Assembly: GCA_052426225.1 (NCBI GenBank)
Contig: JBNJNM010000021.1
Location: forward strand, 2,418,001-2,482,000
Source of the DNA: Zancudomyces culisetae HAW-14-8
Lineage: Eukaryota; Fungi; Kickxellomycota
Direction of reading: 5' to 3'
Length of the DNA: 64,000 nt
Part shown: in pieces, positions 44,202-53,969 of the stretch
Layout of the letters: each line of letters starts with the position of its first letter
Numbering within the stretch: position 1 is the first letter of the stretch
Position numbers and translations under genes: made by a program
The notes under the pieces: generated by a model
Seen by the model: the letters and a program-made list of their open reading frames with translations, nothing else
The model's database searches: none
What the model was told of the DNA's origin: nothing

Positions 44202-44859
44202 TTTTTTTTGTTAGCAAATTTATAAATATATATACAACATTATTATTTTTTAAGTTTAAGGTTATAAGTAGCATAGTATCTAAGAGCTGTTTTTATTAAT
44301 AGGCTCAGCTAATCCGTTTTATTGACCTTAACAAAAAACATCTGGAGAAAAAAGAGTTCAATGTCTAGAATAACTTTGATTACATGTTTGTCATTGTATT
44401 TCTTCAGTTTTCATACACTACTTTTATAAGGTATAAAGTATTTTACAATATTTTTGTTAAGCAATTTTTGTAGTTGCATAATTATTCATACTTTTGGTAT
44501 GTTAGACATAAGGTTTTTCTAATATTTACAAATGTTAACAAACTACTAAAGATTATGTTTTTCAGAAAAACCATACTATAAATTAAATTTATTAATATCA
44601 TATTTTACAGCTGAGTAGAGCTAAAGTAGAAACCATCTAACTGTCAACACAAATAAAATCCACACGACATTTTTTTCAAAACTTTTAATAGGTATTACTT
44701 TTACTTTTTTTAAAGAGTTATATAAGATGGATTTTTTTTATATTTTCGCAGATGCGTACCTAAAAATTTCGTAGAAAGATACAATTTATTGAAACATAAT
44801 AAAATAAATCCCCTTCTATAAATTAAAATCCGAAACTGCACATTTAAACCTCAAAGACA

Positions 44860-46374
44860 TTAAACTGGAAAAGATCCAAGTCTAATAAAAGCTGCAAGTG
44901 ACTCAGTATAAGATGAAAGCTCTTCTGTCGCTACACTGTGACCACATCCATCAAAAATTCTAAATACTGCAGCATCTGGGCCGATTTGAGTAAACATATG
45001 TTCAGAGTTCCCGTGGTCAATAAAGTTGTCACGATTTCCTGTTAAAATCCAAATTCTTCTTCCCGAATAAAGCCTTCCGATCTCTTTTAGTGATTCATCA
45101 GGAACATGGTGTCGAAACACAGCCATCATATGCCCTAAAATGGATGATAATCCGTGGAGTTTGGTGTTGTTTAACCTACGCTGCACACTCTATATCATTT
45201 TTTTAATGATATAACGTAATAATTAGGTTTCATTTTGACCCGAATTGGATATCGATTTTTTGGGTATCTTAAATATAAAATATTTAATGTAATCCAGCAT
45301 AAGATGCTCAATAGTAGCAAGTGAAAATTCCTAGTATAATTTTTTTTACCTCCATAATAAACTCGCGATTTGTTTGCTGTGTTGCAGACAGCTCTGATAT
45401 TTTATCCAGCCATTTCTATTAGCATTCAAACTTATGTTCATTATATTTCATATTCAGTCACCAATATAAACTTGGTTATTAGTCTGATACACAAAAAAAA
45501 ATAGACTTTACATTTGAGTGTAGGACTTCCAAAATGACTTTTGTCTTATCAAGCTGTTTATCTAAAAATAAACATTTAATGTTTGCAGCAACACATTCCC
45601 TTCCAAAAAGTGTTCTTCCAGATGTTGTACTAGAAAGGGTAAGCGTTCGAATGGTATCCGGTGGAGCCAATAATGAAAGTTCCATCGCTATCATCCCGCC
45701 CATACTTGTTCCGACTATGTTTATGGGTTCACCAGACCATCCAACTCCTTCGATTAGCTCTAGAGTGTCTTTTGCCATTTCTCGTGTAGTTCTACGCATC
45801 AGGAGTACACTTATAAACCTTAGTATATATTCAATCAAGTAGAACCAACTTAATAATTATAAAGATATTCTAGCTGTATTCAGCTAATCGCTCTACTAAC
45901 ACTGAAGGTTATGTCGTATTAAAGGATATTGCATAAAAGTTTTACAATTTGAGCGTTGAACCATCATCAGAATATCCGGTATTTCTGTTATCGAATGTCA
46001 ACATTTGGAATTCTGGCTGCGTTTTCTTAAATACTGAGACCTTTGTTATTATAATAAAACAAATATATTTGGGTATGTCAGTGTGATATTTGCTAAGGCA
46101 TTTGCTTGGCATACTGGGAGGTATCGAAAGGACGGTTAAAAAACAAAAGTAATAAAGCTTAAAAGTAGCAAAGTCAAAAAAGTCATATATTTACCACAAA
46201 TTCCCACATTTGCCTATCGGTTCCCATTCCATTTATAAAGACAACTTTAGTATCGCCTTTACCATATATTTCATAGTATAAACGACACGGATTTCCTCTT
46301 TTCTGGCCTACTGATACCTTGCCTTTAGTTTGCAAAGCATCAGCATTAATATTAAATTCGTCCCTCGATTCCAT
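44860..46374 (-). CDS. Alpha/beta hydrolase (multi-exon)
   Basis: LYYEIYG..KVVFINGM, FDNRNTGYS, nucleophile VGTSMGGMIA, LTGNRDNFI (acid), GCGHSV (His). Several GT-AG introns. Confidence 0.88.
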
Positions 46375-46918
46375 TCTTTGGATTTTGTGGCTAGACTATA
46401 CTAATCGGTCAGTCAATTCTTATCAAATGTGAGGTTACTATTTATACCTTAGATGAAACACTTTCAATTGTTGTGGAATTGATTTTTTCAACTAAAAGCA
46501 AAGGTTGGTTATAATTATTTTTTCAAAGCTAATTGGTTTTAATTTTTTAATAGAGGATTGCGCCAATGATTATTGCGATGGTTTTTCGAAATATTCTATA
46601 AAAAAGGGAGTGGGGGGGATAGATTACTGGAATATGAAAATATGACCTTTATACTAAAGCTTAGTAACTTGTTTGGTTGCAAATATTAAAAACCGGATAC
46701 GAGTTGAGTTGAGTTGAGTTGAGTTTGAGCATAATTACTAGGAAAATTGGCAAGAGAGCAATATTTCATATTTGATAAATTATCTTGCTATTTTTTTAGC
46801 ACGAATCTTAATCTATTTTAAAATACTTACTAAAACAAGAAAGTGAATACTTAAAAGGAGTCGAGTGAAAAAAAGCTAGCTAAATCAAAATACCAAACAG
46901 TAAAAAATAAAACATAAA

Positions 46919-48040
46919 ATGGAAAACAAGAAAAAGAAACGAAATTTTAAAAGCTTAAAAATCGATCTGGAATCCGGGGAAGGCACAATAGACAAAGGAC
47001 TAGTAAAGTTGGAAGACAAAAATATGGGAACGATGAATTTTGAACGAGAAGGAAAAAAAGAAGATTGCGATGAAGATAAAGTGATACGGATAGGGTTCTC
47101 ACAGCTAGACATCACTGAAAAGGATATAGAAATCAAAACTAATGAAGAAAAATCTGTTCTGGGGGCAGGGGTTAGTGGGATGGTGTACCGAGTGAAACAC
47201 CGAGCCAGTGGAACACTGATGGCTATGAAAGTGGTAAAGCTGGAGCAGACTACGACAACAAGCACAGCACAGCAACTATTGAAAGAGCTGGAGATATTGA
47301 ATGAATGTAATTCTCCATTTATAGTATCATTCTACGGAGCATTTTGCAACATTGGTGTGAATATCAACAACGGTGGTGGAGGGGGAGGAGGTAGCAACAT
47401 GGTGAAAATATTTATGGAATATATGGATGTGGGATCATTTGATAGGATATACCGAAAAAATGGACCGATTCCAGTTACAGTAATAGGGCTAATGACATAT
47501 TCTGTAATCCAGGGACTGACATACCTATACAACACACATCGAATTATGCACAGAGACATTAAGCCATCAAACATTTTATTAAATTCAAAAGGATATATAA
47601 AACTGTGTGACTTTTCTATATCTAAGCAAATGGAAAGTAATAACAGCATTGCAAACACGTTTGTGGGAACAGCAATTTACATGGCACCAGAAAGAATGCA
47701 GGGGGCTGAATACTCAGTCAAGTCAGATGTGTGGTCACTTGGAACGACGGTTTTGGAACTTGCGCTGGGGAGACACCCATTTGGATTTCAGCAAACCAGC
47801 ATCTTTGAGATGATGCACTATATTTCGACCAGCGAAAAATTGTCCATCCTGGACCCAACTAAGTACGAAAAAAACCTGTGTAGCTTTGTTGACGGATGTC
47901 TGGCTAAAGATCCAAACACCCGTCCCACTCCAAATGCTCTTCTTGCTCACCCCTTTGTCTTGTCCCACTCTGACCTGTATTATAAAAATACCGAAAAACT
48001 TACCCTCCTCCGAAATTGGTTGAATTCCTTAATCCTTTAG
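46919..48040 (+). CDS. MAP kinase kinase, Ste7/Fuz7/Byr1 type
   Basis: Docking motif KKKRNFKSLKI, GAGVSG, AMK, HRDIKPSN, DFS, activation loop SIANTFVGT..YMAPER. Confidence 0.93.
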   Translation: MENKKKKRNFKSLKIDLESGEGTIDKGLVKLEDKNMGTMNFEREGKKEDCDEDKVIRIGFSQLDITEKDIEIKTNEEKSVLGAGVSGMVYRVKHRASGTLMAMKVVKLEQTTTTSTAQQLLKELEILNECNSPFIVSFYGAFCNIGVNINNGGGGGGGSNMVKIFMEYMDVGSFDRIYRKNGPIPVTVIGLMTYSVIQGLTYLYNTHRIMHRDIKPSNILLNSKGYIKLCDFSISKQMESNNSIANTFVGTAIYMAPERMQGAEYSVKSDVWSLGTTVLELALGRHPFGFQQTSIFEMMHYISTSEKLSILDPTKYEKNLCSFVDGCLAKDPNTRPTPNALLAHPFVLSHSDLYYKNTEKLTLLRNWLNSLIL

Positions 48041-48182
48041 TGTAGATTTCCTTTAAATAAACATCTTCCTTTTTTGCATTTCTTGAATCATAATAAAAAA
48101 GGAGATGGATACATATACAACTGAAATACAAAATATTTATGGTGAAACGGATATACATTGATCCAAAGATATCAGTGTATAC

Positions 48183-49551
48183 ATTTCAAAGAGTAGTCTG
48201 AATTGAGTTACGACTCCATTAAAGGAAGCCGCCTTGCGTATCGCACTACATATTGTAATTACAACTACAACAAAAAAGGGTTCCCATATGACTCTTTGGA
48301 GGCTGTTTTTACCATCGACTTTCAAAACTCTTTTCTCGAGACTGAATTTCCCAGTACTTCAAGTATCACCACTTGTATCTTTATTCCATTGGATAACTCC
48401 CTCGACTTTGTAATATCTTTGTATTCCGGTCATGAAACCGGAGTGTTGGTATTTACAAACCAGAATAATAATGAAAACTATGGGGATTGGCGTGATTAAA
48501 TAAGCTGGTTTACGAACTATTCGTGTTTCGGATTGAATAATTGAAACTTTTATTTCATATTCTATACCTGCATTCACTCTCTACCCGAAAGCAGGAAGTG
48601 AAATAAAATATAGAAATCAACAAAAGTTATTTGTTTAAGTTCCAAGGTGTAACGACTTCCACTCTTATAGACGATATCAGATTGTATGACAAGGTAGCAG
48701 TTAAAAAGACAAAAAGATTTGACCCCGCTTCATTCTCTTCCCTCAGTTTACCCTCCCTCATTTCTCCTCCCTTATATTTCAAAGGAAAGTGAAAGGAATT
48801 TGAATAATATAACCAAAGGCCTCTTCGATAAAAAGAGGTGTCAAAACTTCTTGTATTTCAAACTCCCCTTGAGCATAAATCAGACATGCAACTATTAGGA
48901 GACGGATACCCTTACACCAGAACATAAACATATTCATCAAAATACAAGAAAAATCCTAGATGTAAATCAACAGATTCTACACATTCAATCACCACACCCG
49001 CCTTCATTCTTTCCAATTGTGAAACATCCAAAACAACGGTCATGACCAAAAATCCGAAAATAAGGCAAAACCAAGAAAATTAAGAAATAAAGAGCATGGC
49101 AATACTTGAAATGCAGGCAAATTGCAGAATAAGAAAAAAGCCACATTTTCTGGTAACGTCTAAAAACAAGCCCCACAAATGCGTATACATCACGAAGGGT
49201 TAACCCTGACTGATTTAACAGGGTTCTCATCAAGAGCCTTCATTAACACAACATATAAGCACAAGAGCCACTTCATATACTTTCATATATAAAAGTAACC
49301 CTCTCGTTGTAGTTTTTTCTCAGACCTTCCCAAGGGTAATTAAAAAAACAACACATTTAATGTCTTGTTATGCGTTAACCCCTAAATATTGACGCAAGCT
49401 TCTGACCGTTTACTAAATATTTTGATTTCTAGTTATTATACCCGCCAACTTTTTAGATTTAATCCTTTTACAAGAAAAAATAGCAAGGATTCTAAAGGTC
49501 ATCCATACCAGGATAAAAAATATTAAGGAATTTAAACTCTCTCTTTAAAAT
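48183..49551 (-). ncRNA. RPR1: Nuclear RNase P RNA, unusually long (~1370 nt)
   Basis: CR-I GGGAAGGTCTGAGA (49331-49318), CR-IV AGTCATATGGGAA (48293-48281), CR-V AACTCAATTCAGACTACTCT (48209-48190). P4 is GTCTGA/TCAGAC. An 11-bp P1 pairs ATTTTAAAGAG (49551-49541) with CTCTTTGAAAT (48193-48183). P2 is TTCC/GGAA. Many G-U-containing hairpins lie on this strand. Confidence 0.85.
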
Positions 49552-49846
49552 TTTCGAAAACCGCTCTTTTATTTATGCAATATCAATATTCATCGATCCA
49601 AAATCAGAAAAAAATTCGTAATCACACACCCATAAAAATAAGATATTCGCAGAATATATGAATTAATTAATAGCCACCCTCTACTCATCTCAGAAATAAT
49701 AAAGAAAAAGTAATCCAGAGAGAAAAATGTCAAAGACATTTACCAAAGTCTGGTTTTTTTTGTTAGAAATACAAAGCAAATATACATCCGCATAAAACGA
49801 ATGAGAGCTGCACAATACCACCGAAGATCACAATAAATTTCTTGCG

Positions 49847-50036
49847 AAATGTATAATAAAAGTAATTAGATGAAAACTTATCTTCCTCCCACTCTTTTTA
49901 TTTATATTTAAAAAAAGGTCGGATAGTCACAAAACATACCCAAGCATGTTCCTATGTATTCACCCATCACAATAAGATAATGATAAGCGACATTTTGATA
50001 AACCTCCTAATAAAAATAGAAAAACCATACTATCTC
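49847..50036 (-). ncRNA. Candidate intronic structured RNA, H/ACA snoRNA-like
   Basis: Lies inside the 50054-49750 intron. A branched 5' hairpin is closed by GATAGT/ACTATC, followed by H-box ATATAA (49907-49902), a 3' hairpin with an internal loop, and ACA at 49852-49850. Confidence 0.5.
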
Positions 50037-50279
50037 AGATATAGAGATACTTACTCTTATCCTGTGGGATCAAGACAGCACTCCGCAATTGAAGACAAAC
50101 TCCCACTCATGCCTTTTATGAATTCCCTTATTCTAATCTCACTTTCTAGCCATTAACCTAATAACGCTAGGTAAGTTTAAAACAATGGAAAGCATCATGT
50201 CAAGGTAAAAGAAGAGTTCATTAATTTAATTTATCATATTTAATTTTGTCACTTTTGCCATTTTTGGGGAAGAGAAAAT

Positions 50280-50440
50280 AAAAAAATTTTCTAGTTAAAA
50301 ATGCTGCGGTTAAAAAAAGTAATAATGATAACAATTATGACTTGAAAGAACACGTTGTTTTGGGGGGGAACCAACCCCTTAACCCTTCCCTCAATAAAAT
50401 GAAGAAAATAGAAACAAAGTAAAAGCGGAAAATTTTTTCA
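50280..50440. promoter_or_regulatory. RRPE-like AAAAATTTT motifs and a telo-box-like element upstream of the RNase P host locus
   Basis: AAAAAAATTTT at about 50280, AACCCCTTAACCCT at about 50373, GGAAAATTTTTTCA at about 50427. Motif resemblance only, in AT-rich DNA. Confidence 0.3.
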
Positions 50441-50909
50441 ACTCGGGATTTTTTTTTACTTTGCCAATTACAACGGGGCAGGAATATATCCATTCAACAC
50501 ATTCCAATCATCGCATTATTAGTTTGTTTGTAAAGCGATTGTCCACGATGAGTAAATTGGATGTGAGTAGTAAATAAAGTAATATATGAGAAACCCAAAG
50601 CTAACAACTGGTATAGCTACTAAATTAGCGTGGGTGAAGTTTCTCAATGTGATCTAATACATGCCTACCCCCATATTATAAATGGTCAGTCGCGCACAGC
50701 TATGCATTGATTCGTTGTGTTCCTGGAACATTTTGAAAGTAGTATCAATACCGCTGATGGCGGAGATGAGAAGAAAAAGAGTGTATTTTTTTTTAGCAAC
50801 GTATTCCTCCGCTTTAATTTTGATATGCAAGTACAGCTATGCATACAATTCCAAAAAATAAAGTACAAAAGTGATAAAGCACAGCTATACGTGAGAATTC
50901 TCTACATTG

Positions 50910-52259
50910 CTAAGAGAACTCGAAAAAATTAAAACTGTAGCCACTAGGTTTGGAGTGCGAAACACCTATATCTTTAGGGCAAGGGTCATTGGGAGCAGAG
51001 GGGGTAAGAAATGATAGATTAGTAGGCCTCAGCTCAAGTTTTTGGATCGGATAGCATATTTTTTGATTGTAGAAGAGATATGGCTTATTGTCATAAAAAA
51101 TTCCATCCATTCTGCCAGATTTGCGGTTTAAAATCAAATAATAAAACCCATCAATAAACATCTGGGACTCAACACTGGAACCCTTGATATATCCTGTTTC
51201 TTTTATTCTGATAAACAAGTAATTATCAAGTTCTGAGGGCATGTACCTTCCCCTCCATTCCGGATCGAATGGTGTCGTAGACGTAAACCAGAAACTATCA
51301 TCTCTACCTGCGTTGCCACTCCTAGGGGTTTCAAAATTATGTGGGTTCAAAAGACTCCAGTAGGCCAAATCTGTATTTGTTGACGCGCCCCATCGTCTAG
51401 TCCATTGGTCAAAATTCCTAAAATCAACTATTTCACCACTAAACTTTGTTATGACTTCTCTGGCATACCATGGGATATTAAACATTCGTAACGAGCCACA
51501 TAAAACGCCGTTTTCAATATCAACCTCTTCTAGTTCTATAATTACACTCCACTTTGCATTTCTTCTACCATCAACCATCGTGGAATAGCTGATATCTGGT
51601 ACGTTCATTAGCCTTGAGTCGTTCAGTATCTCTGTGTCGGCATTTATCAACCTTTGTACCCCCTTGAATCGGATGCCTGGCCGTAAAAACGACGAATTCA
51701 ATCTCCTCAGTGGCGACAGCCCGCGCGGTATATTTCCAAGGCTGTTTTCGTTGAGCTCGGTTATTTCTGTTACTATTATAAACTCATCTGGCGGAGTAAC
51801 AGATCTAGTATAATCAAACTTTAATTCGGATAGCAAATCTTGCAGAGCGAACTCTTGTCTTGAACTCGTTCTATCTTCCGAGAGGGCTATGTTGGTATGG
51901 GTATCAAGTGCTCTGCTGCTATTCTCTACTATATCTGTATCGCTATCCCTCTCATTGGAAAATTCTTCGGGCGAGAAACTTTGGTTAGTATCAGTAAGTC
52001 TATTATCGTACCCACCTCTCACTTCGATTGCTTGTACACCATCATTGATTTCAAACCTCCAATTTCGATTGTAGATTATATTTTGCCCTCCAAAAATATC
52101 GGTTTCTATCTCCATCAATCCAATACCCTCATTTTCAGTGGAAAATTCTGAACTATATAGTAAGCGCCTTCTAAGATCTAATCTGTCTTCTAAAGCGGAT
52201 TGCTGGTCAACTGGTTCTTCTTCTGGAATCCTTGATTCTGTATTGTTAAAAATTGACAT
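50910..52259 (-). CDS. GID/CTLH complex substrate receptor Gid4/Vid24-like
   Basis: SFLRPGIRFKGVQ, WSVIIELEEVD, LCGSL, TKFSGEIVDF, DLAYW, YLFIRIKE, GFYYL..R.SG...GIFYD...Q.LEL. Confidence 0.85.
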   Translation of the reverse strand: MSIFNNTESRIPEEEPVDQQSALEDRLDLRRRLLYSSEFSTENEGIGLMEIETDIFGGQNIIYNRNWRFEINDGVQAIEVRGGYDNRLTDTNQSFSPEEFSNERDSDTDIVENSSRALDTHTNIALSEDRTSSRQEFALQDLLSELKFDYTRSVTPPDEFIIVTEITELNENSLGNIPRGLSPLRRLNSSFLRPGIRFKGVQRLINADTEILNDSRLMNVPDISYSTMVDGRRNAKWSVIIELEEVDIENGVLCGSLRMFNIPWYAREVITKFSGEIVDFRNFDQWTRRWGASTNTDLAYWSLLNPHNFETPRSGNAGRDDSFWFTSTTPFDPEWRGRYMPSELDNYLFIRIKETGYIKGSSVESQMFIDGFYYLILNRKSGRMDGIFYDNKPYLFYNQKICYPIQKLELRPTNLSFLTPSAPNDPCPKDIGVSHSKPSGYSFNFFEFS

Positions 52260-53969
52260 TTTGTGTGCATGTTACGATTTTATCGCTTAGTTTTCGAATA
52301 AACCTTAAGAAAACGGAAAGAAAACAAATTAGTACCAGATTCGTGTTTGAGTGTTGTGGTAATAATATCGTATAAATTAAATTCTGTGTGTTGTTTTTTC
52401 TCTTTGAAATTCCGATGTTGATTAAGTAACTGTACAATCTAGATAAATTTTAAAGATTTTCTCAGCTACAGGCTCGCTGTATTTAGATCTAAAGAGCTCT
52501 TTTAGTAGATAATATGGTCATTGGTTTTTTAAAAAAATACGTCCCTTAAACCATTAGGTAATATAAAAAAGACAGTATTATTAAACCAATATGATAATAC
52601 CTCGATGTCTGTTTTGTTATATGGTGAATCGATAAAGTAGGGCTTTATTAAGGCGTTTGACCTTTCTTGTTATTTTATTCTTTTTAAATATGGTTTTTTA
52701 AGACAGTTTTAAAAACTAAAGCTAGAACTATTCCTACAAATAAGCGATGAGGATAAGTGTAAAGTGAATTAGAAATAGATTAAAAATGCAAATCATGCCT
52801 GTGTAATAGTTTACAGCTTTTTGATTCAGAATAATTATAATTATAAAGTTATGGTTGATCTTAATAAAGAGTAGTAAATTTATTATTATTTAAAAAACAA
52901 GTTGTCTAAAAAGACAACTTGCTCTGCAAATTCAGACGATACTCTGCCTCCATTTTTAATTTTTTTCTATATGAACTGTAATCTGATAATACAGTTAATA
53001 AAATAGCAATGATATTAAAACAATCACGAGTCTGCTGGTTAAGAGAATCTATTATTCATTGATTCATTGATTCATTACTTGGAATTACACTATCGCTATC
53101 TACCAAAATATATTTACTCTTTACACCATCAAAACTTTGAATATTGGCAGTTATAACTCTATCAATATTTTAAAATATTTGTAAACATTGAATATTCAGA
53201 AAAACTCGACAAATTAAAAACTTCGAGGGCTGTAATTGACGTTATATGTACAAACAATGATATGATTACCACTAGGGCTAAAGATTTGAGAACTTCACAT
53301 CTACCCATAAACATGGTATAAACGTGACTATACGAGCAGAAGTAGAAAAACAATTCACAGCGATTTTGTGTATTAACAAGCAGATGTACAGGTTCACGTT
53401 CTCAGTACCCCCCCCCCCCCTGTTAATCTAGTCTTGAGAGATGCTTTGCTACTGATAATACTACTCTCATTTCTTGTTTTGATGAAATATTCTGTTCTCT
53501 ATTTGGGGAACAATGAGACAGGTAAGATTTTTTTTTTGCTCTTTTAAGAAAATCCAAAACACTTGTTCTTTCGTTGTCGCGAAAAGGATGCTAGATGATC
53601 TTTAATTTCTAAGATGATAGAATACATCACGTTCGAAAATAAAAATAAAAATAAAAATAAAAACAAACAAGTAACTAGATAAACTTGAGTTAAAGCTATC
53701 AGAGTTTTCATAAAGCATATTTGAAACGTGATTACAATAAACAGTTATATGGAGACTAGTGAATAACCAGCACTATGTTTGAGGAGAAATCAGTTAGAAA
53801 ATAACAGCTTTAGTTTTGAAAATATTAGAGGTAATATTGGAGCAAAATAATAGGCTACGTGACGCTGTATTCGTGTGTCTGCATCTAGTTGACGAGCCTG
53901 GCCTGGCATAAGTAATCATCGCTCAAGTCAGACTTAGAGCATAATAGTACAGGTATTGAAGAGATTTGT

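Follow-up and report, generated by a model that had tools for sequence, protein, structure and literature searches.

The question raised by this locus is where the RNA of ribonuclease P (RNase P) begins and ends in the fungus Zancudomyces culisetae HAW-14-8, and which polymerase makes it. We analyzed a 64,000-nt stretch of contig JBNJNM010000021.1 (the window, to which coordinates refer unless another sequence is named). Fungal RNase P RNA (RPR) is held to be a transcript of RNA polymerase III (Pol III); to our knowledge the only escape of an RPR from Pol III is into introns of RNA polymerase II (Pol II) genes in insects and crustaceans. An initial annotation of the window had proposed that this RPR lies in the second intron of a spliced, non-coding, snoRNA (small nucleolar RNA)-host-like gene with a 6-nt micro-exon. 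We found that the minus strand at about 49454-48096 almost certainly encodes the nuclear RPR of Z. culisetae (Harpellales), the presumed catalytic RNA that trims the 5' leaders of tRNAs. The explanation that we favor, with a probability of roughly 55%, is that this giant RPR is no longer made by Pol III. Pol II would transcribe a longer precursor, starting between about 49540 and about 50300, and later trimming as far as P1, a long, protein-bound terminal stem of 45 bp, would define the mature ends.

The presence of an RPR at this locus, as first proposed, was upheld by partial alignments to the Rfam family RF00009, by orthology with the RPR of Smittium angustum, and by base pairing. The features of the gene are listed here from its 5' end to its 3' end, after the whole; CR stands for conserved region, and T6 for a run of six T residues.

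48096..49454, minus strand: whole RPR including the extended P1, 1,359 nt; partial RF00009 alignments, S. angustum orthology and synteny, end-to-end pairing
49406..49454, minus strand: P1 5' strand; its core, ACGG at 49409-49406, is the same in S. angustum
49401..49403, minus strand: P2 5' strand AGA, pairing with UUU at 48190-48188; the S. angustum orthologue has P2 at the same positions in its Rfam alignment
49332..49383, minus strand: P3 (AGGGG...CCCUU), with an enlarged loop that holds T7 at 49348-49342; Rfam alignment
49318..49331, minus strand: CR-I GGGAAGGUCUGAGA, including the P4 5' strand; it equals the Rfam consensus exactly and is almost unchanged in S. angustum and Mycoemilia
49143..49154, minus strand: CR-II ACCAGAAAAUGU; the 8-mer ACCAGAAA is common to S. 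angustum and the Rfam consensus, with P10/11 pairing on the flank
48326..49142, minus strand: giant P12 hairpin, 818 nt, imperfect, between CR-II and the CR-III candidate; folding
48318..48325, minus strand: CR-III candidate UUGAAAGU (UGAAA-type), directly 3' of P12 and before the P10/11 3' strand in the fold
48240..48247, minus strand: CR-IV AGUGCGAU; Rfam alignment with high posterior probability, kept in both relatives
48191..48210, minus strand: CR-V, including the P4 3' strand at 48202-48198; UUCAG pairs with CUGAG of CR-I
48152..48186, minus strand: hairpin insertion of 35 nt between the P2 and P1 3' strands; not in S. angustum
48096..48150, minus strand: P1 3' strand, core CCGU at 48150-48147; T6 at its end, 48100-48095

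The elements expected of an RF00009 member were recovered: CR-I with P4, CR-IV with CR-V, P1 with P2 and P3, and a specificity domain with CR-II, P12 and CR-III. The GNAANNUCNGNG-type sequence followed by the P4 5' strand, which marks CR-I in this family, is present as GGGAAGGUCUGAGA at 49331-49318, and the upstream part scanned alone with the Rfam model gave a proper P3 and an exact CR-I at 49383-49318. In the predicted fold, a closing stem forms between 49314-49298 and 48281-48263, and P10/11 between 49177-49155 and 48316-48297. The assignment of UUGAAAGU to CR-III follows from its position in this fold and is less certain than those of the other conserved regions. As far as sequence can tell, the RPR is a single-copy nuclear gene with the canonical core P1, P2, P3, CR-I, P4, CR-II, CR-III, CR-IV and CR-V.

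The pairing of 49454-49406 with 48150-48096 that forms P1 comprises 45 bp, of which 41 are Watson-Crick pairs, has an energy of -36 kcal/mol and a z of -6.8, and was equaled by none of 300 shuffled sequences. Counted from one core P1 strand to the other (49409-48147, less a few bases), the RNA measures 1,264 nt, which gives an overall size range of about 1.27-1.36 kb, and we have good confidence that its limits are right to within about 40 nt. The initial annotation had drawn P1 between 49551-49542 and 48194-48185. We rejected that helix, which would take up bases that form conserved P2 and lacks significance, with a z of -2 for the long version and 1 of 300 shuffles matching the short one. 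The ends given to the RPR were misplaced as well; the start appears to lie about 100-140 nt downstream of 49551, and the end 30-85 nt past the one proposed.

Orthologues in two relatives support this reading of the core. The S. angustum RPR (64 bits; L004 11844-11393, minus strand) lies downstream of a MAP kinase kinase (MEK) gene, in the same convergent position as in Z. culisetae, and shares with the Z. culisetae RPR the 5' ACGGUCAGAAGCUUGCGU, CR-I, CR-IV, CR-V and the P2/P1 layout. The Mycoemilia scoparia RPR (73 bits; L044 1565-1877) has the 5'-side CAGAAGCUUGCGU, CR-I, CR-IV and CR-V in common with the other two. Its P1 is UGGC/GCCA where S. angustum and Z. culisetae have ACGG/CCGU, a compensatory change. 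The P3 of Mycoemilia is enlarged to about 110 nt.

The gene owes its size mainly to two elements. CR-I and CR-V are 1113 nt apart in Z. culisetae, compared with 332 nt in S. angustum and 236 nt in Mycoemilia, and the S. angustum RPR differs in being only about 420-450 nt long, with a P1 of 19-22 bp (ACGG/CCGU extended) and without the giant P12. Judged by the fold and by this comparison, the extra length is mainly the 818-nt P12 and the 45-bp P1, with smaller contributions from the larger P3 loop and the 35-nt P2/P1 hairpin. Folded as on the RPR strand, P12 reaches a minimum free energy of -265 kcal/mol (z -10), and its complement only -172 kcal/mol (z -3.6). G-U pairs outnumber A-C mismatches by 52 to 4 on the RPR strand, whereas the complement has 15 of each. 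This strand asymmetry indicates a helix maintained as RNA on the RPR strand, and the entire 1.3 kb therefore behaves as one RNA under selection. An origin of the insert from a repeat or transposon was rejected: a search for other copies of P12 in the genome and for internal repeats found neither.

The insert also accounts for a misleading database match. Rfam reports RF00009 at 48393-48180 with 28.8 bits, just above the gathering threshold of 28, in a compact alignment that omits 103 model positions. Taken at face value, this match would make the functional RPR a compact 214-nt RNA, perhaps driven by elements resembling a proximal sequence element (PSE; 48489, 8.2 bits) and a TATA box (48452, TAAATA, 30 nt further downstream), and would leave the upstream part as a relic. 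We consider this highly improbable and rejected the 214-nt model. Its CR-I is an interrupted look-alike that has two insertions and pairs with a T-run in the P12 5' arm; CR-II and CR-III are missing, P1 is mispaired, and the T6 at 48277-48272 is internal to the RNA. The true P3 and CR-I lie 1 kb upstream, with an exact consensus match and orthology to S. angustum, and P1 joins 49454 to 48096. The covariance model cannot bridge the 818-nt insert, and its 28.8 bits come from a mis-threaded alignment: a decoy CR-I-like motif, GGGAAAUUCAGUCUCGAGA (48330-48352, minus strand), lies inside the P12 3' arm and causes Rfam to report the false compact RPR. Giant RPR genes are therefore easily mis-annotated, as covariance models mis-thread them.

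Could Pol III make an RNA of this kind? Within the RPR there are 20 runs of T4 or longer, nine of T5 or longer and three of T6 or longer. Counted from the core start, the first of them, the T7 of the P3 loop, comes after 66 nt. The nine runs of at least T5 compare with about 4.5 expected from composition, an enrichment of about 2-fold with no sign of depletion. In contrast, runs of T4-T8 are the terminators of the tRNA, U6 and signal recognition particle (SRP) RNA genes of the same genome. Across 26 tRNA genes, the first downstream T-run was T4 in 9, T5 in 12 and T6-T8 in 5, with 24 of the genes in the T4-T6 range; it started 1-7 nt after the gene in 25 of the 26, and a T4 was usually backed by a longer run. 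U6 has no internal T-run and a T8 terminator, and SRP RNA has no internal run and ends in T5 plus T7. A type-3 Pol III gene has a 3' T-run and no internal T-run of terminator length, whereas the RPR has its 3' T6 together with nine internal runs of T5 or longer. We infer that Pol III could not make the full RPR unless it behaves unusually in this fungus, and that the RPR is most probably not a Pol III product. The T-runs had already been put forward in the initial annotation as an argument against Pol III, which the tRNA, U6, SRP and PSE comparisons strengthen; of the runs that it named in the RPR body, T7 at 49348-49342 and T6 at 48277-48272 are inside, while the T6 at about 49515 is upstream of the RPR.

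Some tRNA genes form tandem pairs 5-6 nt apart with no T-run between them (C6 about 1309458-1309608, C11 about 79082-79232 and C12 about 1167510-1167660; L023, L025 and L028), so that Pol III probably transcribes each pair as one dicistronic unit.

An ordinary, independent Pol III gene would start near 49454-49409, read through its internal T-runs and end at 48100-48095. Such a gene would agree with Pol III being the rule for fungal RPRs and with the position of a T6 at the very end of the terminal helix, and a TATA-like GGTATAATAAC lies 30-35 nt ahead of the conserved ACGG. Eukaryotic RPRs analyzed in species ranging from yeast to humans are products of Pol III (PMC4287351). We nevertheless regard this explanation as distinctly unlikely. 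The T7 at +66 and two T6 are among the runs that Pol III would have to ignore, the gene lacks a PSE, and there are no credible A and B boxes, a search by eye giving only a poor GGATCGATGAA. Moreover, the TATA-like motif is within the P1 5' strand, which has to be transcribed for the helix to form. A split gene with an internal promoter was rejected because T7 lies before CR-I.

The missing PSE is best seen by comparison with other small RNA genes. An alignment of upstream regions showed the element TTCCCCATAAC at -65 to -81 and a TATA-like box at -30 to -40 before the Z. culisetae U6, SRP, U2, U4 and U5 genes. The same element precedes the S. angustum RPR (L004 about 11955) and, as ACCCATAAC, the Mycoemilia RPR (L044 about 2036). 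In S. angustum, the PSE CCCCATAA is ~110 nt and TATATAAA ~80 nt upstream of the RPR, a PSE+TATA arrangement by which this orthologue differs from the Z. culisetae gene. TTCCCCATAAC looks like a small nuclear RNA (snRNA)-type PSE in an early-diverging fungus. It serves genes of two kinds, U6 and SRP presumably being transcribed by Pol III, and U2, U4 and U5 by Pol II. The PSE 10-mer was not enriched genome-wide (28 copies, and 41 for a control).

No PSE was found in the 1.45 kb upstream of the Z. culisetae RPR, where the best candidate had 9.4 bits, a score at background frequency, compared with 15-21 bits for real sites; the exact CCCCATAA occurs nowhere in the window. The RPR thus lacks the TTCCCCATAAC at -65 to -81 that marks type-3 Pol III genes here. 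Because the element stands before both the S. angustum and the Mycoemilia RPRs, the ancestral RPR of Kickxellomycotina would have been an independent gene with an snRNA-type promoter, and the PSE is, by this comparison, lost from the Z. culisetae gene. The S. angustum locus has T7 and T6 between promoter and P1 and two T5 within the RPR, which hints that its promoter may already work with Pol II.

The composition of the RPR strand (G>C, T>A) extends ~850 nt upstream (49455-50300) and flips near 50300-50400. Strand skew could not be used as a marker of the transcription start, as it is confined to coding sequence in control genes. Near 50300-50400 on the minus strand there are also a site at 50273 that weakly resembles a PSE (9.4 bits), a stretch at about 50238 that looks like a TATA box, and AAAATTTTTTT (about 50290), none of them significant alone.

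A transcript of Pol II need not be a simple precursor, and the sister ribozyme RNA of the same genome shows another arrangement. The RNase MRP RNA of Z. culisetae (92 bits, 383 nt; L036 1501-1883, within L036 1406-3010, which is G000:C13, about 1135370-1137000, plus strand) has GTAAGG 95 nt upstream, and CTAAC at +10 and CAG at +32 downstream. These are followed by a 61-nt exon without an open reading frame (ORF), GTAAGT, SNORD36 (60 bits, gathering threshold 30) and GCTAAC..TAG, and further on by two weaker C/D candidates, each flanked by GT..CTAAT/TACTAAT..AG. By these signals the host gene is non-coding and has a single snoRNA in each intron, with the MRP RNA occupying intron 1; this RNA is apparently dependent on Pol II. 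We know of no earlier description of a snoRNA host gene that carries the MRP RNA of a fungus. Like the RPR, the MRP RNA is without a PSE. It differs in its tight GTAAGG and CTAAC..CAG flanks and in the SNORD36 of the next intron; the RPR has no such flanks.

This precedent raises the prior for a non-coding Pol II host transcript whose splicing would remove an intron containing the RPR, either between 49743 and 48121, as first drawn, or between other splice sites. Debranching and trimming would then free the RPR, as happens in insects and crustaceans and as with the MRP RNA of this genome. The absence of a PSE, the incompatibility with Pol III and the upstream continuation of the G+T-rich composition to about 50300 are also as this explanation would have it, and a proposed first intron has the same GTAAGT/CTAAC/CAG grammar. 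The two upstream elements of the drawn model are as follows.

49750..50054, minus strand: claimed intron 1 (GTAAGT...CTAAC-N9-CAG); canonical signals, fold z -3.0
49738..49749, minus strand: claimed 6-nt micro-exon with GTAAAT donor; motif present, chance of a match with loose donors 33%

All six motifs on which the model was built are on the minus strand where they had been placed: GTAAGT (50054-50049), CTAAC (49766-49762), CAG (49752-49750), ACTTTG (49749-49744), GTAAAT (49743-49738) and TTTCAG (48126-48121). Intron 1 is canonical for this genome, with its CTAAC 9 nt before the CAG, but a strict GTAAGT..CTAAC..YAG pattern also arose in 7.5% of 1450-nt Markov sequences of matching composition, and in 33% with the loose donors that intron 2 needs.

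The second intron fares worse. Its acceptor TTTCAG had been described as about 60 nt past P1, yet every one of its six bases is engaged in the P1 helix, as part of the 3' strand. No CTAAC or CTAAT occurs within the 50 nt before the 48121 acceptor, where the nearest candidate is a loose CTGAT 52 nt upstream. Nor do other splice sites fit closely. There is no GTAAG[GT] within 100 nt upstream of P1 (the nearest donor-like sequences are GTATGG at -53 and GTAAAA at -16) and no CTAAC or CTAAT within 40 nt downstream of it; the MRP locus passes this search, and the RPR fails it. The third exon of the drawn model would run in antisense orientation into MEK coding sequence, which is 56 nt away. A host gene with intron 2 and a 6-nt micro-exon, as drawn, is thus at odds with both the RPR ends and the 45-bp P1 helix that contains the acceptor. 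Claimed intron 2 and its micro-exon are probably unreal, and the RPR quite probably does not lie inside an intron as drawn.

The proposed exons and introns upstream of the RPR likewise gave no sign of a snoRNA-host-like gene. No conserved exon was found there; claimed intron 1 and the rest of the upstream region had no Rfam match at E values up to 5, and a scan for C/D snoRNAs that recovered SNORD36 as a control found no candidate. The 846 nt upstream of the RPR have no significant structure (z -1.6). A coding host was rejected, as no ORF of at least 60 aa occurs between 49234 and 50685. The S. angustum orthologue has its own PSE+TATA promoter, not a host, and the published Z. culisetae genome (28.7 Mb) averages 1.78 exons per gene (PMC5026252).

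Compared with the intronic RPRs of arthropods, the locus agrees in being without the promoter and terminator logic of Pol III (no PSE, nine internal runs of T5 or longer). Motifs for splicing on both sides exist, but the acceptor is paired in P1, a strong branch site is missing, and chance alone gives such a pattern in 7.5-33% of comparable sequences. An intronic RPR is accordingly unlikely in our view. Similarly doubtful is a reading in which both the P and the MRP RNAs left Pol III and the RPR, too, is excised from a spliced, non-coding Pol II transcript starting near 50200-50300; if true, the intron residence of P and MRP RNAs would be a convergence with insects and crustaceans that is undescribed in fungi.

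Synthesis by Pol II as a longer precursor with ends trimmed to P1 is the explanation that we prefer, and several points weigh against it. The T6 at 48100-48095 ends exactly where the P1 3' strand does, like a Pol III terminator. The polymerase argument assumes that Pol III of Harpellales stops at T5-T7, as the tRNA flanks suggest. For the RPR, neither a promoter of Pol II nor signals for a cap or a 3' end were identified. The GTAAGT..CTAAC..CAG 300-600 nt upstream may mark an intron that is real, in a leader or a host transcript, and the RPR comparison took in two relatives only, S. angustum and Mycoemilia scoparia.

The neighbors of the RPR are a Vid24/Gid4-like gene of the same orientation (stop at 50910) and, on the other side, the convergent MEK gene (stop at 48040).

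46919..48040, plus strand: MAP kinase kinase (MEK, Ste7/FUZ7-like), convergent with the RPR; Pfam and homologues; stop codon 56 nt from the P1 end, S. angustum arranged alike
50910..52259, minus strand: Vid24/Gid4-like gene upstream of the RPR; Pfam; its ORF product equals a Z. culisetae protein at 100% identity

The gene upstream of the S. angustum RPR is a different one. In Mycoemilia, the RPR is about 4 kb from MEK (L044 6001-7687), which suggests that the RPR-MEK synteny is old and loose across Kickxellomycotina. An RPR was not found on the S. mucronatum MEK contig, in Logan contigs, or at the Martensiomyces and Coemansia MEK loci. Past MEK, the S. megazygosporum contig has 150 nt before it ends in Ns. 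The S. angustum M24 peptidase used as a query returned only itself at a very strict E-value cut-off, and the Vid24 search found no close relative.

RF00009 has two matches in the assembly, one at the window locus and one on a 159-kb contig. The copies are 99.8% identical over 8.7 kb, on which ground the second is taken to be a haplotig or duplicate. Between this copy (G000:C19:133000-142000) and window positions 44205-52887 there are 16 differences, with one single-nucleotide polymorphism (SNP) in the RPR (48863, apical P12) and seven differences within 50334-50822. With only that SNP, the haplotig comparison of the RPR was uninformative.

If synthesis by Pol II is correct, the Z. culisetae RPR would be the second case in which an essential ribozyme has independently changed its polymerase, and also a natural test of whether freedom from the T-run constraint of Pol III allows an RNA to become gigantic.

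The closest parallels in size are the RPR1 genes of Nakaseomyces, the largest RPRs known, which the Z. culisetae RPR equals. The C. glabrata RPR reportedly carries three insertions (Kachouri et al. 2005). The giant RPR1 RNAs of Nakaseomyces resemble that of Z. culisetae in that the catalytic core is canonical and the specificity domain is longer by hundreds of nucleotides, for a total of about 1.1-1.4 kb. They differ in belonging to Saccharomycotina, whereas Z. culisetae is an independent lineage (Zoopagomycota), and in Z. culisetae the excess is almost all one 818-nt P12 plus the 45-bp P1, with abundant T5-T7 runs. RPR1 measures 1149 nt in Candida glabrata and 1368 nt in N. delphensis (PMC3001073, PMC3847288).

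With regard to transcription, type-3 (PSE+TATA) promoters such as those of U6, 7SL and H1 are like those of the relatives' RPRs and of Z. culisetae U6 and SRP, with the PSE at about -65 to -80; the Z. culisetae RPR differs in the loss of its PSE. It has parallels in the intronic RPRs of insects and crustaceans, such as that in the Drosophila ATPsynC intron, which have no Pol III promoter and T stretches that are not terminators (PMC4287351, PMC6797745), and whose mature ends presumably also come from processing to P1. In those animals a conserved gene that codes for protein and has clear exons acts as the host, whereas the acceptor proposed in Z. culisetae falls inside P1.

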